This document shows, piece after piece, positions 3,001 to 64,000 of a stretch of DNA of 64,000 bases. The position numbers and the translations under genes are program-made. The notes below the pieces were generated by a model that worked only from the letters and a program-made list of their open reading frames with translations, was not told the origin of the DNA and searched no databases. Position 1 is the stretch's first letter. Each line of letters starts with the position of its first letter. The DNA comes from Oculina patagonica (taxonomy: Eukaryota), in contig NC_135761.1 of the NCBI RefSeq assembly GCF_052425735.1, positions 24,118,001-24,182,000 on the forward strand, in the 5' to 3' direction.

Positions 3001-4059
3001 AATGAAATAGTTCCTTTCGATGTGTATAAATTTACGTCAACAAGAATAACATCTTCTCCAAACATTCAAACAAATTTTCTCGTTACCAACACCAAGCAAC
3101 TTGTGTACATCTTGTGTACTGCAACGGAAGTTAATAACTTTTAACAAGTCAGTATGTCAAGACAATTGAACAAAAATGTGTTTGTTAGACAAAGCTTGCG
3201 AAAATTGATCACGGGTTAGCTCGCAAAAAATAAATGGAGTCGTTTTTCGTTATCACGCACAAAATAAACAAGAAAAAGAAGTAATGAAAAAGTTCTTTGC
3301 ATTGACTTGTGTATGGCGCAGCAGAAATTGATAACAATTTCAGAAGAATGAGCAAGACAATTAAAGGAGATGAGGGTTTTTGGCAGATAAAATTATGAAT
3401 ACTTAAAATGAAAGACTGTTACAATGGAATTCAGGCAAAAATAATTTGAACAAATTACTCACACAACAAAATTTCTAAAGATTGTCAGTTCACAAAAATA
3501 AATTTGAACAAAGCTGTTCTTTATCGCTAAAAATAACGAGTTCGTTGTAATGGCTCAGTGTTCGAAAGGTAAAAACGATTTAACAACAGCGTGCGAGATA
3601 TAATTTTGGATGAGCAAGACAATTAGAGCAAAAAAAACTGTCGCCGGATTTAAACATGGGATTTTGTTATTAATAACATGAAAGTAAACAAGAAAAAATA
3701 AATAAATGTTCTAAAACAGTTTGATTTTGTGGTCTGTATAACAGTAAATCCCAACTTAATCGAGACTGCATCGTAACATGCTCCGAACCAGACATAAGGG
3801 TTTTGCATACTTAGCTTACAAAATGACAAGAGAACATAGGAACATGCGATTTCCGTACGCTTCGTTAAACAAAGTAAGCCAAAATTAAAAAACCAAAAAC
3901 CAAAAAAAGGAAATAACTTGTTGTGAAATGGTGCAAACGCAAAACGATTTTATGTTCAATGATTTGCTGGAAGGAATTTGTCCCGCTTTACATTTGAAAG
4001 TCCCGTGTTCTCTTGTCCACTACAACTGTTAAATTCGTTGATGAAGCAAACTTTTATTT

Positions 4060-4367
4060 TTAAGGTGGCACTTTCTGTATACTTTAAAATAAAAATAGAT
4101 TTCCAAATACATTTGGTATTAAAATCAGCAACTAAGCAATAATTGTATTCCGCGAAAGTCGTGTTTTTAGTTGATGACTGTTTGTGTTTCGCTTACAAAA
4201 TTAAATAGAAATTCCTGTACGACAGAACGAGTAAAATTATCATGCTGAAAAATGGAACGTTTTGGAAATTAACTGCAAACAATTGTGGAATTTAAACTAG
4301 TTTTTTCTTTGTTCGTGTTACTTCAAGAGTTGTCTATACTCTCGTTCGTTTTGCAGTGCCACCTTAA
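4060..4367. mobile_element. Non-autonomous DNA transposon (MITE), TTAA target, Kolobok/piggyBac-like
   Basis: Perfect inverted ends TTAAGGTGGCACT (4060-4072) and AGTGCCACCTTAA (4355-4367); no ORF inside. Confidence 0.75.
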
Positions 4368-4740
4368 CAAATCACCTCGCTGCGACATCAAATAAATTAA
4401 GTTGTGAATGGTGGCTGATGTTCAACAAACTCAACTCAGTTCAATTGATTCATATTAAATCACTAATAATATGATGAATATTGTATTAATTTCCATTATG
4501 AGTCTTTTTCATTACTTGATGCAAACAATTTTCCTTTTCTTTTGATACAGACGATAAGTATTACAGATCTTATACCACCGAGAGTGAAGCTCTCCTTAAA
4601 ACCTAGACGTTTGTTCAGCCACCATTTTCACTAAGATTATTTAACAATTTAAAGTTCTTATCTTTGCAGTATTTCCTTCCGATTGAGTGATCTCAGTTTG
4701 TCCTTTTGGCCAGGTCCTTCTTTCCTTTCAGTCTTTTCCT

Positions 4741-4989
4741 CTACTTTTCCTGAAAATGAATAATCAATCCAATGATTAGCAAACGCTTAAATTTAAAGCC
4801 TTTTCACAGCAACAAACACTCTGGAATGGGTTCTTAAGCGGGCCAAAGCAATATCCATTTTACAGTTGCCTTCCAAGTCGGGAGGGGAGGTGGAGGTGAC
4901 CGGATACAAACCTCCCTGCTTTATTATGTAAATGCAAACTAGTTAGCATAAGAACAACATGATTTACACAACAAAAGCAGTGAGGTATG

Positions 4990-57031: not shown

Positions 57032-57590
57032 TGTATAAACTATTTTTCTCTCGTCGTAAAAAAGCAAAACGCGACAAGGCTTCGAAGCGGAGGATGGTTT
57101 CTCGGAAAAACCCTGTTTACCTGCTATGCCTGTATATGGTCAGAACGGCATTGTTATTATAGACATACTGTCAAGTTTGACGATCCCGCAGCTGCCATGA
57201 CAATAGCAAAACGGCTGTTTTCCTAGAAGTGGAAACCCCGTTTCGTTTAATCAGAAAGCAGCTGTCAAAAAAACCCGTGGAAGCTTCGCCTCTCGAAAAT
57301 TCTTGCTCCCGGATTTCAGCTTTTTTGCAATACATTGCTAGACAAAAACAGAGCTTAAAACGTGCTAAAAACAACTATGTTTGAATGTTTTGGCAGTGGG
57401 TTCAAACCTGTGAAAAAACATTCTGCCGAAGAAAAACAAACACAGAAAAGTTGAAGAAATTCAATCAAAAGGGCTCAGCAGGTATGTTAGTAAATTTATC
57501 GTAAGTGTGACAAAAACAGATGTCTAAGACTACAAACCATCAAGCCTTCGAGAGTTGTTTTCAAGGTTTCAGCAGGGATTGATAAGAACG
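57032..57590. promoter_or_regulatory. K2 upstream region, duplicate of the K3 upstream region (62220-62770), with GAS-type sites
   Basis: Colinear similarity to 62220-62770; TTCTCGGAA (57099), TTCCTAGAA (57220), TGTTTAC (57114). Confidence 0.7.
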
Positions 57591-59730: not shown

Positions 59731-60434
59731 TGAATTGTATCGATGTTTTTCTGTTGCCTTCCCGCGCTGTTTACGACAAGATATTAGGCAAGCGCGCACT
59801 GATAAAATCGCAAGTCAACCGTCACGGCTTCGAAACCGAAGGTCAATTTCTTGGAAAATCCTTCTGTTTGTTGAGTCGCGTGACTTTTAATCGGACGCGA
59901 ATACCGTATCGGACTTGTGAAATGAATATGTTTTTTTTTTGTTTTCAATTTTCAAAACAGTATATTGTTGTAATCAATCGCTCCTTTATTCTGTATCCTT
60001 TACAAAATGCCTATTCTGTGTTGGGATTTACAGCGCATTCATGTGACCTAAATAGTGTCTTTCTGTTAAATTTGGAATTATTACTGAATGAAGTTTACAA
60101 TAAGCGTTACAAAATTTGTTTCCAAGAAGTTTGAAATGCTCAATTCCACATTCTAAGAAACGGTTCTAAAATATTATCAAACATTGCTCAGTTTTAAAAT
60201 AGTCACGACACGAGTGAAATGCATTCTTATAATTGGGGGAAATGTCTGAGACAACTTTTCCCAAACTTGTTACTTCAAACTTCTTTCTACTTCTTCTTTC
60301 TACTTTGAAAAATTATATACCTGAAGCCTGAAAAAGGTACCCCTTTCGGGCGGAGCCTCCCCGTATAGGCCATTATAGGGAGTACTCCCCCCCCCGGGGG
60401 GTTTATTTACTCATTTACGAAACACAACAAGAAT

Positions 60435-60566
60435 NNNNNNNNNNNNNNNNNNNNNNNNNNNNNNNNNNNNNNNNNNNNNNNNNNNNNNNNNNNNNNNNNN
60501 NNNNNNNNNNNNNNNNNNNNNNNNNNNNNNNNNNNNNNNNNNNNNNNNNNNNNNNNNNNNNNNNNN
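60435..60566. other. Assembly gap
   Basis: Run of N. Confidence 1.
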
Positions 60567-61235
60567 CACCTTCAGATTAATGAAAAAACTCAACCACTTT
60601 TTCACAAGTATTCACAAGATGAATATTGCTGTATCAATATAATAAGCTCATCAGTAACACTTCTATTTAAGTATACATGTAAAGCATTCGACCACAACTA
60701 ATTCAATACAAAGTCGTATATAGTGTAAAATTAAAATGTTATATCAATGATAAAGTTTCATTTTGTTTCTGCCTTGTTGGCACACATTAGAAGCTTATTC
60801 GTGGTTTTCACTTGATGTCTTCAAAATTGTAAAATCCAAAATTGCAAGACCCCTGAATTTCTATCCTTCACTGGCTGTTAGACATCCTTAATAAATATAT
60901 TGTTAGCTCGATAGCACCAGCCGTACCCTCATCCTGTAATTTTAAACAATCTGAACAGTCGAGGTTTGGCGAGAAGTGGAACATTCTGAAGAATAGCTCG
61001 AGTACGGAGTACCGTACAGACTTGAAACAAGGACAAGTAGATTATCTAGTACTTGTCTACGACCTGTTGTATCCTTTATTGTTTTGGTCCAATAGTTTTG
61101 CATTAATTTTTCGCGGCATGACAGTTGTGTGACAATGAAAACCACCCATTACTGAAAATATTTTATACACATGAATTACGTCTCACTTTCCTAGAAACCT
61201 TTAAACGATCCGGTGCCCTGTTACCAATAGTGGGT

Positions 61236-62219
61236 TTAACAACACTCACCGGTACTTGACGAATCCCGCTGGCCATGTTGGAGCCTTATAGCTCGGCGAA
61301 TGTTCATCACCTTGTCATACACCTTTTGAGCACTTGGTCGGTCATCTGGGTCGTACTGCAAAGCCTTGAGAGCGACTCTTTGCAGAGCGTTGGACCCTTG
61401 TGCATAGCTTGAGAATGCAATTCGGATACGACGACCAACCTCCTTCATTGCAAGCCCAAGGCCAACCTTTCCTACCCCATGAATTTTTACAAAGGCGCCG
61501 TACATTGCTTTTCCGTCAACCACGATGAAATCCCGCTCAAGGATTGCGTAAAACAGCGTGCCAAGTGAAAATACATCGGCCTTTTCTGTGTAATGGCCAG
61601 TGAAAAATTCAGGTGCCACCCAGTGTATGGGGCCAATTCCTGAGCTCATGTAATATTGCGTGTAACTGGTAAGCCATGAACCGTCATCTTCTTGAGCGTA
61701 GGTTCGTTTGAGTGCGGTGTACTCTCGAGCCAGGCCAAAATCAGCCAACTTCACATCCAACGTTGCAGTCAGAAGCACATTATCCGCCTTTAAATCGCGA
61801 TGAACCACTCCGCGTGAGTGGAGATGGGCAAGAGCTGCGGATATTTGACTTATCCATTTCAAATTCATTTCTTCAGTACTCGGTCGATCAAGACGCTCGT
61901 TTAAACTTCCGCCTGAGCAGTACTCAGTCAAAAGCAACATGTGTAAAAGACCTTTCGAATCAAGGTACTTATCTGCTGCTATGATTTCGATCACATTCTT
62001 GTGAGAAATTTTGCTGAGTGTTCTAGCCTCGCGGACAGCATTATAAAGCTGCGAGTCATACAAACAAGGAACATCTTTTAATGCATAGATTGTGGAACTT
62101 GCCTTGTCTTTTACTTTGTAGACGACACCAAAAGCACCATTGCCAAGTCGCTGTTGGATTCTAACTGTTTTGTTGTTAACTGAAACTCTCGGTGGAAGAT
62201 TCAGAGCGGCCTGCTGCAT
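61236..62219 (-). CDS. Protein kinase K3, PDIK1L/STK35-like, intronless, 327 aa, ends in CC
   Basis: GNGAFG, ALK, HRDLKADN, DFG, GPIHWVAPE, YTEKADVFSLG..ILERDF; close paralogue of K2. First ATG at 62219. Confidence 0.92.
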   Translation of the reverse strand: MQQAALNLPPRVSVNNKTVRIQQRLGNGAFGVVYKVKDKASSTIYALKDVPCLYDSQLYNAVREARTLSKISHKNVIEIIAADKYLDSKGLLHMLLLTEYCSGGSLNERLDRPSTEEMNLKWISQISAALAHLHSRGVVHRDLKADNVLLTATLDVKLADFGLAREYTALKRTYAQEDDGSWLTSYTQYYMSSGIGPIHWVAPEFFTGHYTEKADVFSLGTLFYAILERDFIVVDGKAMYGAFVKIHGVGKVGLGLAMKEVGRRIRIAFSSYAQGSNALQRVALKALQYDPDDRPSAQKVYDKVMNIRRAIRLQHGQRDSSSTGECC

Positions 62220-62880
62220 TTTATTTGCTATTCTTCTCTCGTCGTAAAAAACAAAATGCAACAGAGCTTCAAAGTGGAGGACGGGTTCTCGGAAAAATCC
62301 TGTTTACCTGCTATTAAATTCGCACCATGCCCGTATATGGTCAGAAAGTCATTGTCATTTCAGACATACTATAAAGTTTTACGGTCCCAATACTAAAAAC
62401 AACTTTCCCAGAAGTGGAAAACCCGTTTCGTCCAATCAGAAAGCGGCTGTCAAAACAAATCAGTATTTTCAAACATGGTAGCTTTGTCGATGGCGCCAGC
62501 TTCTCGCTCTCCGGGGTTTTGGCTTTTTCGCAGTACATTTTTAGACAAATACGAGGTTAAAACGTGCTAAAGTAGGTTCAAACCTTTACATAAACCTACT
62601 TAAATAAACTACTTACCGCATTTCTGCTGAAGAAAACGAAAACAGAAAAACTGAGGAAATTCAACCAGAAGAGCTCAGCAGGTACGTTGGTGAATTTTTT
62701 CTTAGAGATGGCCAAGAATACGAACCATCAAGCCTTCAAGATTTGTTTTCACGGTTTCAATGGGTACGATTAAGGACATTAGCTAAGCGCGCATAAAATC
62801 GCAAGTCAAGCGTCACGGCTTTGAAACCGAAGGTCAATTTCTTAGAAAACCTGTTGTTTGCTCAGTCGCGTGACTTGTGC
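62220..62880. promoter_or_regulatory. Divergent promoter between K3 and the LicD-family gene
   Basis: TTCTCGGAA (62286), TTCCCAGAA (62405), CCAAT (62432), TTCTTAGAA (62839); plus-strand donor CAG|GTACGT at about 62681. Confidence 0.6.
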
Positions 62881-63513
62881 ATAGCAATGTCCTCGTTTCC
62901 GATTTCGTCTGTGGACGAAAAAGCCGCCGAGTCATATCATCGAAAGCGTCTCGCTGTTCTTATATTTGTTGAATTGTAGTTATTTATCGTTTCCAAGAGA
63001 AACATTTAACCTTGACAGAAGATGATATAAGTTCAGTTTCATTAGCATGCCCTACCGCCTCCCCCGCCGGAAGTATTGCAACCGAATTTAGAGAAGGGAA
63101 AGCACTATCAGACATTTCCCCCAAATATAAGAATGCATTTCACTCCTGTCATGACTATTTTAGAGAAGATAGCTGTCTTTCTTCATGTCCTTTAATCAGA
63201 TTACAAAGTGAACATGCCAGCCATTCCGCCCCCTTTCATAGAACTACTTCGCTTAGGTTAAACTGAAATCCCCCAATCTTTTAACAATAAACAAATTCTA
63301 TGACAAAAACTGTCAGACAAGCATTTGCTAAAACAATAATTTCATTCGCCCTCGATGGACATGTCAATGAGATGATCATAATCAACTCGCACTTCATGCT
63401 TTTTGATTATTTTGTCGCCTGATTTCCAACTCATGCTCATGGAATAATTGTAACATAATATGAAACAATTACGATATAATAATTGTCTGTATTATCATAC
63501 ATTCCACAGAGAT

Positions 63514-64000
63514 ATGGCGACTTGTGATGATGATTTCTTATGCATTTTGCAAGATGACAGCCAAGAAGGAGAGCAAGAAATTCCAGATATTGGTCATTCT
63601 CCAGCCGAAGCTACAACATCAAAGTCTATCAGTTTTGACATGTGGAATGGTTGTACCCTAGGAAACTTTAGGGCCAAACTGGGTCAAAACAGGACATTCA
63701 AACCTATTTGTATTTATCTGCTTAAAGAAGTTACAGAGTTTCTGAGTAGGTTCAACATTCAGTACCTGGTTTGTGGTGGCACAGCTCTGTCAGTGTACAG
63801 GGAAGGTGGGAAAATGATATGTCATGATGGGGATGTTGATATTGCCATATTTGAGTCTGACTTTTCAAGTGTTATGCAGAATCTTTCTGCCTTAACTTCC
63901 AAGCAAGATGGTTACATAAGCCTGTCAGACAAATGCCCTGTGAATGGAACAAGTTGGTTTAATGTAGATGGAAGCGAAATCTTGTACAACGGATGTGGTG
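63514..64000 (+). CDS. LicD/fukutin-family nucleotidyltransferase-fold protein (5' part, runs off window)
   Basis: Open frame from ATG 63514, just after acceptor ccacag: MATCDDDFL...LLKEVTEFLSRFNIQYLVCGGTALSVYREGGKMICHDGDVDIAIF, matching the LicD pattern GGT-LG--R-G---PWD-D-D. Confidence 0.8.
   Translation, partial: MATCDDDFLCILQDDSQEGEQEIPDIGHSPAEATTSKSISFDMWNGCTLGNFRAKLGQNRTFKPICIYLLKEVTEFLSRFNIQYLVCGGTALSVYREGGKMICHDGDVDIAIFESDFSSVMQNLSALTSKQDGYISLSDKCPVNGTSWFNVDGSEILYNGCG

Follow-up and report, generated by a model that had tools for sequence, protein, structure and literature searches.

Does a LicD-type gene that lies head to head with a protein kinase gene in the coral Oculina patagonica belong with it to an immune module, or is the kinase an incidental neighbour? 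The question arises at one end of a 64,000-nucleotide stretch of genomic DNA (the window), where K3, a single-exon Ser/Thr protein kinase gene, occupies positions 61236–62219 of the minus strand (ATG at 62219, stop codon at 61236–61238) and a LicD-type open reading frame (ORF) starts on the plus strand with an ATG at 63514–63516. The K3 ORF as a whole spans 61236–62261, scores 158.8 bits against Pfam Pkinase and is one of a tandem array of paralogues (50–80% identity by tblastn) that are spread across 102 kb. An earlier note on this DNA saw the two genes diverge over about 1.3 kb, and the distance between their start codons is indeed 1294 bp. From this layout it derived a cytosolic nucleotidyltransferase (NTase) sharing a GAS-containing promoter with the kinases, possibly in an undescribed NTase–kinase defence module. 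Our main result on that proposal is negative: it depends on an adjacency seen only in this genome, and the motifs it invokes sit in DNA that is repeated or duplicated. We consider it likely that the plus-strand ORF makes up the entire coding exon of a LicD/FKTN/FKRP-family enzyme, that this enzyme is soluble and probably cytosolic, and that the proximity of the gene to a kinase is incidental.

An intact member of the LicD family

Positions 63514–64000 of the plus strand hold LicD codons 1–162 of 301. Retrieval of the gene beyond the window, as the earlier note had proposed, yielded an uninterrupted ORF of 301 amino acids, encoded by a single exon of 301 codons whose end lies 419 bases outside the window (stop codon at window-equivalent 64417–64419; C4:24182419). 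The records for the same contig include a 301-aa product identical to it. The ORF matches Pfam PF04991 in two stretches; its score, 42.3 bits, exceeds the curated gathering threshold of 22.6, and all homologues of the protein carry this domain. In the AlphaFold2 model (pLDDT 85.7, pTM 0.83), disorder is predicted only at residues 1–31 and 296–301. Foldseek returned FKRP with CDP-ribitol or CMP bound as the top solved structure (3e-7), FKRP, FKTN, Haemophilus influenzae LicD and rickettsial RP688/689 as matches among Swiss-Prot models, and, among AFDB clusters, 30 listed matches that are all either LicD-, FKTN- or FKRP-named or unnamed. Pfam, structure prediction and structure-cluster matches thus agree on the LicD fold that had been read from the sequence.

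The unusual form of the LicD motif is also real, as the protein reads GGTALSVYREGGKMICHDGDVD in place of the canonical GTLLGAARHHGFIPWDxDxD of the other LicD paralogues in the genome. A profile search of the PDB aligned GGTAL..R..G..I.HDgDvD to FKRP, which sets G88-G89-T90 and D105, D107 and D109 (encoded at 63826–63840) against FKRP G344-G345-S346 and D360/362/364. In 26 sequences, D105, D107, D109 and D194 are invariant and G88-G89-T90 is invariant or nearly so; the equivalence of D194 with FKRP Asp416 is drawn from spacing and strand position rather than from a residue-level structural alignment. When LicD was compared with coding sequences from three loci in other corals, dN/dS came to 0.18–0.22, showing that it is under purifying selection. 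On the evidence of sequence and predicted structure, the coral gene is a genuine, intact member of the LicD/FKTN/FKRP family.

A soluble clade without membrane anchors

The earlier note had described an acidic N-terminus with no clear signal anchor, and charge and hydropathy bear this out. Because residues 1–40 have a net charge of −9 and the highest 19-residue Kyte–Doolittle mean in the protein is 0.96, no signal anchor is present. Across 26 clade members, no transmembrane (TM)-like segment (19-residue Kyte–Doolittle mean >1.6) occurs and the N-termini are likewise acidic, whereas each of the ten other LicD paralogues examined, from at least 41 LicD matches in the same genome, has an N-terminal membrane anchor. 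We consider it very improbable that the protein is a type-II membrane protein of the Golgi. It is probably soluble and, as far as its sequence predicts, cytosolic; membrane recruitment or non-classical secretion could be envisaged.

Phylogenetic analysis, which the earlier note had suggested, grouped coral subclades A and B with flatworms (SH-aLRT 95), apart from the TM-anchored LicD proteins of the genome. By sequence comparison this is a distinct anchor-less clade, made up of stony corals (sister subclades A and B) and parasitic flatworms, and feature matches in a protein atlas suggest that it also includes molluscs. Its members are marked by an N-terminal S-[FL]-D-M-W-G-x-C motif and a C-terminal EYGYLGRDA. 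A second LicD copy lies 27.5 kb downstream of the first and is frameshifted by a 5-nt insertion after codon 164; a protein encoded on another NCBI contig, 7.5 kb long, is truncated in the same way. On our reading, the clade-A gene was segmentally duplicated here together with its downstream kinases, and the second LicD copy was frameshifted afterwards.

A scan of bacterial and archaeal genomes revealed no close bacterial relative that would point to recent transfer. The sole match, with 76% identity, was a 4.9-kb ‘MAG: bacterium’ contig, which is almost certainly mis-binned coral DNA because it contains the coral-type acceptor. A search of the literature on LicD in corals found nothing relevant.

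Origin of the upstream interval

Four GAS-like TTCNNNGAA sites are present in the 1294-bp interval, at 62286, 62405, 62839 and 63235, where about 0.6 would be expected from the window-wide shuffle rate. Over the whole window there are 41 such sites against 28.9 ± 5.4 in shuffled sequence, a count reached in 5 of 100 shuffles. Each of the four lies in DNA with copies elsewhere. The site closest to K3 (62286–62294, TTCTCGGAA) is 67 nt 5′ of the K3 ATG in a flank that has been duplicated along with the kinases: this flank shares 85% identity with those of other kinases, and the same 9-mer recurs 68 nt 5′ of the K2 ATG at 57099. The 62405 site belongs to what is left of the 5′ end of a dispersed DUF3504-type element, a decayed fragment (62397–62767, plus strand) that has 75 matches over many contigs and also aligns to three fuller copies; in a fuller copy, the downstream ORF scores 57 bits as DUF3504. 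The site at 62839 is part of a local repeat (62775–62876) with 86% identity to window positions 59780–59886, and its counterpart there, at 59848, reads TTCTTGGAA. The last site, 63235, falls in a LicD-proximal segment (63214–63513, plus strand) that aligns to the second LicD copy, with the duplication boundary at L007 2214.

The DUF3504-type fragment also contains the donor-like CAG|GTACGT (62679–62687). Fuller copies of the element read CAGCCGTTACCTT at the donor position and TTCTCACAC at the GAS position, and alignment with these copies settles the element origin of the donor region; a 62-aa ORF fragment around the donor has no Pfam match. Repeats and duplicated segments make up much of the intergenic DNA, which weakens the idea of a shared promoter. 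The sites that the earlier note inferred are there, but the 1294 bp 5′ of LicD contain no GAS site at any of five loci from other corals. In O. patagonica itself, the proximity of K3 and the presence of four sites where about 0.6 would be expected would be compatible with some local co-regulation.

The 5′ end of the LicD transcript

Both splice signals that had been pointed out, the donor-like CAG|GTACGT and an acceptor 4 nt before the LicD ATG, exist in the sequence. With its GT at 62682, the donor ranks highest in the interval by a simple position-weight score. The acceptor, a pyrimidine-rich tract followed by an AG at 63508–63509, closes the LicD-proximal segment, and an exon that follows it would therefore start at 63510, 4 nt 5′ of the ATG. 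A YAG acceptor is located 4–7 nt 5′ of the LicD ATG in 9/9 loci examined from other corals, and the NCBI model of the second copy splices an upstream exon onto the corresponding acceptor; this annotated exon 1 has no homology to the region 5′ of the first copy. Seven orthologue contigs from Logan/ENA (L009, L010, L012, L027, L028, L042 and L043) were searched for a spliced 5′ exon and none showed it; all retain intron-like sequence upstream of the ATG and are thus genomic or unspliced. Two further contigs, from presumed-RNA runs over window-equivalent positions 61001–67000, break at the acceptor, leaving 116 and 144 unplaced upstream letters. Most likely, a non-coding 5′ exon would be spliced 4 nt before the ATG and the entire protein would be encoded in exon 2.

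Competing explanations

If a cytosolic NTase and the kinases answered to one bidirectional STAT/GAS-responsive promoter, as an undescribed immune module would predict, the head-to-head arrangement, the excess of GAS-like sites, the anchor-less protein and a fold within the Pol-beta NTase superfamily would all be accounted for. The linkage and the promoter are not conserved, however. At four loci from other corals that carry orthologues or relatives (L011, L013 from Stylophora, L014 and L029), tblastn with K3 detected no K3-like kinase within ±10 kb of LicD. The same holds for the two other soluble LicD loci in this genome, namely the clade-B paralogue at C4:64.02 Mb (within about 14–16 kb) and the trio of soluble paralogues at C10:0.51–0.54 Mb (within its 30 kb). 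Upstream of LicD at five loci from other corals, the GAS-like sites have no counterparts. In the O. patagonica interval, all four of them and the donor lie in duplicated segments, in a local repeat or in what remains of a transposon. The closest structural matches are phospho-alcohol transferases, and the second LicD copy of the array has been left to decay. On our reading, the position of LicD inside the kinase array is lineage-specific, the clade-A gene and its downstream kinases having been duplicated as a segment, and we therefore regard the head-to-head pair as an incidental neighbourhood rather than a functional module. We give the NTase–kinase module hardly any credence.

Two other explanations concern what lies upstream of the ATG. 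An overlooked exon encoding a membrane anchor would turn the protein into an ordinary Golgi type-II, fukutin-like enzyme: with an acceptor only 4 nt before the ATG, an in-phase upstream exon could in principle be coding, and anchors are the rule among the examined members of this large family in the genome. Against this, the annotated products of Stylophora and Montipora and the flatworm proteins begin at the same acidic N-terminus, the recorded product equals the ORF, and the sole annotated upstream coding exon, that of the second copy, is hydrophilic (maximum Kyte–Doolittle mean −0.19). The anchored paralogues branch apart from this clade in the tree, and phmmer gives no link between the two at E ≤ 10. 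A hidden anchor is very improbable. The 5′ end of the DUF3504-type element, which is aimed at LicD, might instead have been exapted as a transposon promoter that works independently of K3. Transcription from it would give a non-coding exon 1 whose 3′ end is the donor at 62682, itself created by mutation, and this exon would be spliced to 63510. In favour, the fragment retains in plus orientation the invariant 5′ block of the element, with its CCAAT; two substitutions that set the fragment apart from the fuller copies created the donor, which is the best in the interval; and the acceptor is real. But the two contigs that break at the acceptor were not placed on 62400–62800, where depth is 0–2 compared with 6–11 on the coding exon (these being assembled contigs, which cannot prove absence), and the orthologues in other corals lack the DUF3504 fragment. 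Such a promoter seems unlikely to us.

Predicted activity of the soluble LicD

As a soluble LicD-family enzyme beside a kinase by happenstance, the protein would by homology be a Mg2+/Mn2+-dependent phosphotransferase. We infer that it binds a CDP-linked alcohol such as CDP-choline, CDP-ethanolamine, CDP-glycerol or CDP-ribitol and passes the phospho-alcohol to a hydroxyl group of an acceptor, releasing CMP. D105, D107, D109 and D194 would take the roles of FKRP Asp360, Asp362, Asp364 and Asp416. We know of no member of the anchor-less animal LicD clade with a known substrate. The roles of the catalytic aspartates have been described for FKRP, and LicD-type enzymes move a phospho-alcohol from CDP donors (PMC6965139). 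In this chemistry CDP-X is cleaved at the bond that links its alpha and beta phosphates and phospho-X is transferred, with no polymerising or cyclising of NTPs (PMC6965139). Nucleotide signals are not a product of LicD enzymes.

A soluble LicD with intact catalytic residues, conserved in both corals and flatworms, makes a reasonable enzyme candidate. Phosphorylcholine transferases outside bacteria are still described as unidentified (PMC6149742), and LicD genes are expanded in a fluke genome with no function assigned (PMC11727788). One speculative and rather doubtful extension is that the anchor-less metazoan clade transfers phospho-alcohols in the cytosol to an acceptor inside the cell, be it a protein, a lipid or a glycan. 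It would then be a candidate for the eukaryotic enzyme that attaches phosphorylcholine or a similar zwitterionic group, and in this coral it might also be wired to the kinase array.

Comparison with known systems

The analogy with cGAS and OAS invoked in the earlier note holds at one level only: coral LicD and the cGAS/OAS-type CD-NTases have the Pol-beta-like core of the NTase superfamily in common, and the structural neighbours of the coral protein are FKRP, FKTN and bacterial LicD. Pfam detects no Mab21 or OAS domain in it. Nematostella cGAS matches the model at rank 15 (TM 0.28, probability 0.75), and the best cGAS or CdnE matches (TM 0.24–0.28, E 6e-3 to 4e-2) fall far below FKRP and LicD.

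Within its own Pfam family, coral LicD has structural matches in Caenorhabditis elegans T07A5.1/W02B3.4 and yeast Mnn4/Mnn14. The TM-anchored coral paralogues (for example L015–L026) are also single-exon ORFs of about 300 aa, but differ in their hydrophobic anchors (Kyte–Doolittle mean 2.0–3.0), their canonical motif and their separate long branch. FKRP, the best solved structural match, and FKTN are animal ribitol-5-phosphate transferases (PDB 6KAM; PMC6965139) that have the LicD-type NTase-fold catalytic domain in common with the coral protein, and all keep the hG[GS]-like GGT motif, the D-x-D-x-D triad and the third-strand Asp. Unlike them, coral LicD lacks a type-II signal anchor, a stem domain and a zinc-finger loop; it has 301 aa against 461–495 aa, and identity is 17–20% over about 200 residues.

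In architecture, the coral protein resembles H. influenzae LicD (P14184) and the NCBIfam protein Mf1 of Mycoplasma fermentans, which are small, anchor-less, single-domain proteins of about 250–300 aa. Bacterial LicD phosphocholine transferases match the coral model with TM 0.45–0.51, and NF045866 gives a weak N-terminal match. Prokaryote-type and metagenomic LicDs (60–97 bits) are closer to coral LicD than are the anchored LicDs of its own genome. Identity to bacterial LicD is nevertheless about 30% at best, and the coral gene is eukaryotic, with a predicted 5′ intron and the motifs of its own clade.

Gene structure of LicD and its second copy

The LicD gene diverges on the plus strand from K3, the minus-strand kinase paralogue of the tandem array (protein kinase ORF at 61236–62261, ATG at 62219; Pfam Pkinase, 158.8 bits), with 1294 bp between the two ATGs. 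Its reading frame runs off the window and, once completed with fetched adjoining DNA, is a single, uninterrupted ORF of 301 codons, from the ATG at 63514 to a stop codon at 64417–64419 (window numbering carried past the window's end, hereafter window-equivalent). The encoded protein has an acidic N terminus (net charge −9 across 40 residues), a glycine/aspartate motif reading GGTALSVYREGGKMICHDGDVD and, across its 301 residues, no hydrophobic segment (maximum 19-residue Kyte–Doolittle mean, 0.96). The best donor match within the K3–LicD interval is a plus-strand CAG/GTACGT with its GT at 62682; a plus-strand pyrimidine tract and acceptor AG (63508–63509) stand 4 nt before the LicD ATG, and the interval holds four GAS (STAT-type) sites, TTCNNNGAA, versus about 0.6 expected. 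All the sequence observations of the earlier note (ORFs, donor, acceptor, acidic N terminus, motif and GAS sites) are thus present. The window (C4:24,118,001–24,182,000 of a 529-Mb assembly) is, judging from homologues, stony coral DNA and contains a run of N at 60436–60566.

The same array holds a second LicD copy (copy 2; C4:24209024–24209931, full-coordinate 91024–91931) with 96% nucleotide identity to the window copy. Its codon 164 is followed by five extra nucleotides (TAAAT) that shift the frame and truncate the protein at 181 aa, before D194; because the same truncated protein is on record from a different, 7.5-kb NCBI contig, the frameshift is real and not an assembly error. Just beyond the window's end, 21 nt past the stop codon of the window gene, lies a 1317-bp high-copy element with terminal inverted repeats of about 230 bp (window-equivalent 64441–65757; positions 3441–4757 of fetched locus L007), which copy 2 does not carry. 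Contigs of all four public runs compared omit exactly these 1317 bases, which suggests that the element entered the 3′ untranslated region recently or is polymorphic there.

A YAG acceptor preceded by a pyrimidine tract is found 4–7 nt before the ATG in 9/9 loci fetched from other corals, among them the clade-B gene of Stylophora. The copy 2 product on record (226 aa) takes its first 44 residues from a hydrophilic exon 2.9 kb upstream, which ends at a CGG/GTAATG donor and joins exactly onto the pre-ATG acceptor; annotators therefore do use this acceptor. For the window copy, one product on record has 301 aa and is identical to the ORF and another, of 259 aa, begins at Met43, which argues against a hidden anchor exon. 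Its 5′ exon was not located in contigs of runs guessed to be RNA. Two such contigs break at the acceptor, leaving 116 and 144 upstream letters unplaced, and contig depth is 0–2 over 62400–62800 versus 6–11 on the coding exon, a pattern that counts mildly against the 62682 donor.

Origin of the intergenic DNA and linkage to kinases

The earlier note read the K3–LicD interval as one GAS-containing promoter of a cytosolic NTase co-regulated with the kinases, possibly forming an NTase–kinase defence module. This 'promoter' is largely repeat and duplicated DNA. The stretch 62397–62767 is the decayed remnant of the 5′ part of a dispersed DUF3504-type element (75 matches on many contigs in a search of the same genome); one fuller copy continues past this part into a DUF3504 ORF (57 bits). 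In this family, with fuller copies at L044, L045 and L046, a conserved 5′ block bearing CCAAT goes with an exon that has a KDGQxYEPSSL-type motif and, farther downstream, the DUF3504 ORF. The donor-like site is coding sequence, CAGCCGTTACCTT, in three aligned fuller copies, and two substitutions turned it into CAGCAGGTACGTT; the GAS site at 62405 reads TTCTCACAC in the fuller copies. The remaining GAS sites lie in a local repeat with a second occurrence at 59780–59886 (62839), in the kinase 5′ flank, which was duplicated along with the kinases (62286), and in a segment duplicated with LicD and retained in copy 2 (63235). Given these locations, the local GAS excess in large part reflects shared descent of repeated segments. 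The equivalent 1294 bp upstream of LicD contained no GAS site at any of five loci from other corals. If the excess is to be assigned at all, it goes with the kinase array rather than with LicD. An identical 9-mer, TTCTCGGAA, occurs at 57099 and 62286, 67–68 nt upstream of the ATGs of K2 (57031) and K3 (62219). As an element it is conserved between the kinase 5′ flanks, which may be no more than a trace of recent duplication.

K3-like kinases lie downstream of both LicD copies in the array, in which LicD and its downstream DNA were duplicated as a single segment with a boundary 300 bp upstream of the ATG. A tblastn search with K3 found no kinase in the fetched flanks (up to 10 kb each side) of four LicD loci, namely an 86%-identical orthologue, the Stylophora gene, a gene of a third coral and L029 (described below), where the genes nearby include pentraxin, aspartoacylase-like and CILP-like genes. 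The same search returned nothing within about 14–16 kb of the clade-B paralogue in this genome or across the 30 kb holding three LicD genes on C10. With neither linkage nor motifs conserved at the coral loci compared, and the motifs in repeat or duplicated DNA, the defence module is unsupported; duplication of the segment within the array, with one LicD copy truncated, is not the behaviour expected if selection maintained a module.

An anchor-less LicD clade

The genome contains at least 41 LicD matches, many of them tandemly clustered (for example, C11:6.32–6.35 Mb, C14:2.18 Mb, C8:25.86–25.91 Mb, C3:17.50–17.53 Mb and C4:59.49–59.56 Mb). All ten paralogues extracted are single-exon, intronless ORFs of about 300 aa with an N-terminal hydrophobic type-II anchor (Kyte–Doolittle mean 2.0–3.0) and the canonical GTLLGAARHHGFIPWDxDxD motif, so the anchored family is greatly expanded here. 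The window LicD belongs to a distinct, anchor-less clade. No TM-like segment occurs in any of the 26 sequences of this clade, and phmmer at E ≤ 10 does not connect the window LicD with the anchored paralogues; prokaryote-type and metagenomic LicDs match it at 60–97 bits. A quick maximum-likelihood tree grouped coral subclade A (this gene), coral subclade B (Stylophora and Montipora) and flatworm proteins (Schistosoma, Dicrocoelium, Dibothriocephalus, Schistocephalus and Sparganum) with an SH-aLRT of 95, and placed the anchored coral LicDs well outside. Neighbouring clusters in the protein atlas come from Cnidaria, Platyhelminthes and Mollusca.

Soluble-type LicDs in this genome comprise the window gene, the frameshifted copy 2, a clade-B paralogue (54% identity) at C4:64.02 Mb and the C10 trio. 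The trio (C10:523902–536906) consists of three tandem anchor-less genes of 257–276 aa, 33% identical to the window gene, and groups in the tree with a metagenomic LicD, apart from the coral/flatworm clade. Compared with the coding sequences of three loci from other corals, the window gene has a dN/dS of 0.18–0.22, which indicates purifying selection. L029 (CBDDTI010000572.1), a 4.9-kb contig labelled 'MAG: bacterium', encodes a coral-type LicD (76% identity) whose ATG is preceded by the same splice-acceptor context, and is probably coral host DNA misbinned into a MAG.

Fold and predicted chemistry

The protein matches Pfam LicD (PF04991) at 42.3 bits (cut-off 22.6). Its AlphaFold2 model, built with 26 homologues, has a mean pLDDT of 85.7 and a pTM of 0.83, with disorder limited to residues 1–31 and 296–301. 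The best solved structural matches are FKRP with CDP-ribitol or CMP bound (E = 3e-7); matches among reviewed proteins are FKRP, FKTN, Haemophilus LicD, three rickettsial LicD-like proteins, C. elegans T07A5.1/W02B3.4 and yeast Mnn4/Mnn14, and the AFDB cluster matches listed are all LicD/FKTN/FKRP by name or unnamed. Together with the absence of a TM-like segment across the clade, the Pfam match and FKRP-like fold support the cytosolic LicD-fold protein proposed earlier.

FKRP cleaves CDP-ribitol and transfers ribitol phosphate, and its Asp360, Asp362, Asp364 and Asp416 bind metal and are essential (PMC6965139). The clade profile aligns its GGTAL...R..G..I.HDgDvD stretch onto the FKRP segment, and the equivalents of these aspartates, D105, D107, D109 and D194, are invariant in 26/26 sequences; we infer the pairing of D194 with Asp416 from spacing and strand position. 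As all catalytic residues are in place, the motif described as altered is a clade-specific variant. The question that a soluble LicD raises, of modest importance, is that of its substrate: phosphorylcholine transferases outside bacteria are described as still unidentified (PMC6149742), and LicD genes are expanded in a fluke genome, with no function given (PMC11727788).

By homology, the enzyme would be expected to transfer a phospho-alcohol from a CDP donor, rather than to synthesize a nucleotide second messenger. The LicD model matches cGAS and CdnE only remotely, at superfamily level (TM 0.24–0.28). This is not the enzyme class of a signalling NTase, and the defence-module reading is unsupported on this count too. 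Catalytically intact by its residues, this conserved soluble LicD is best placed as a new member within the known LicD family.
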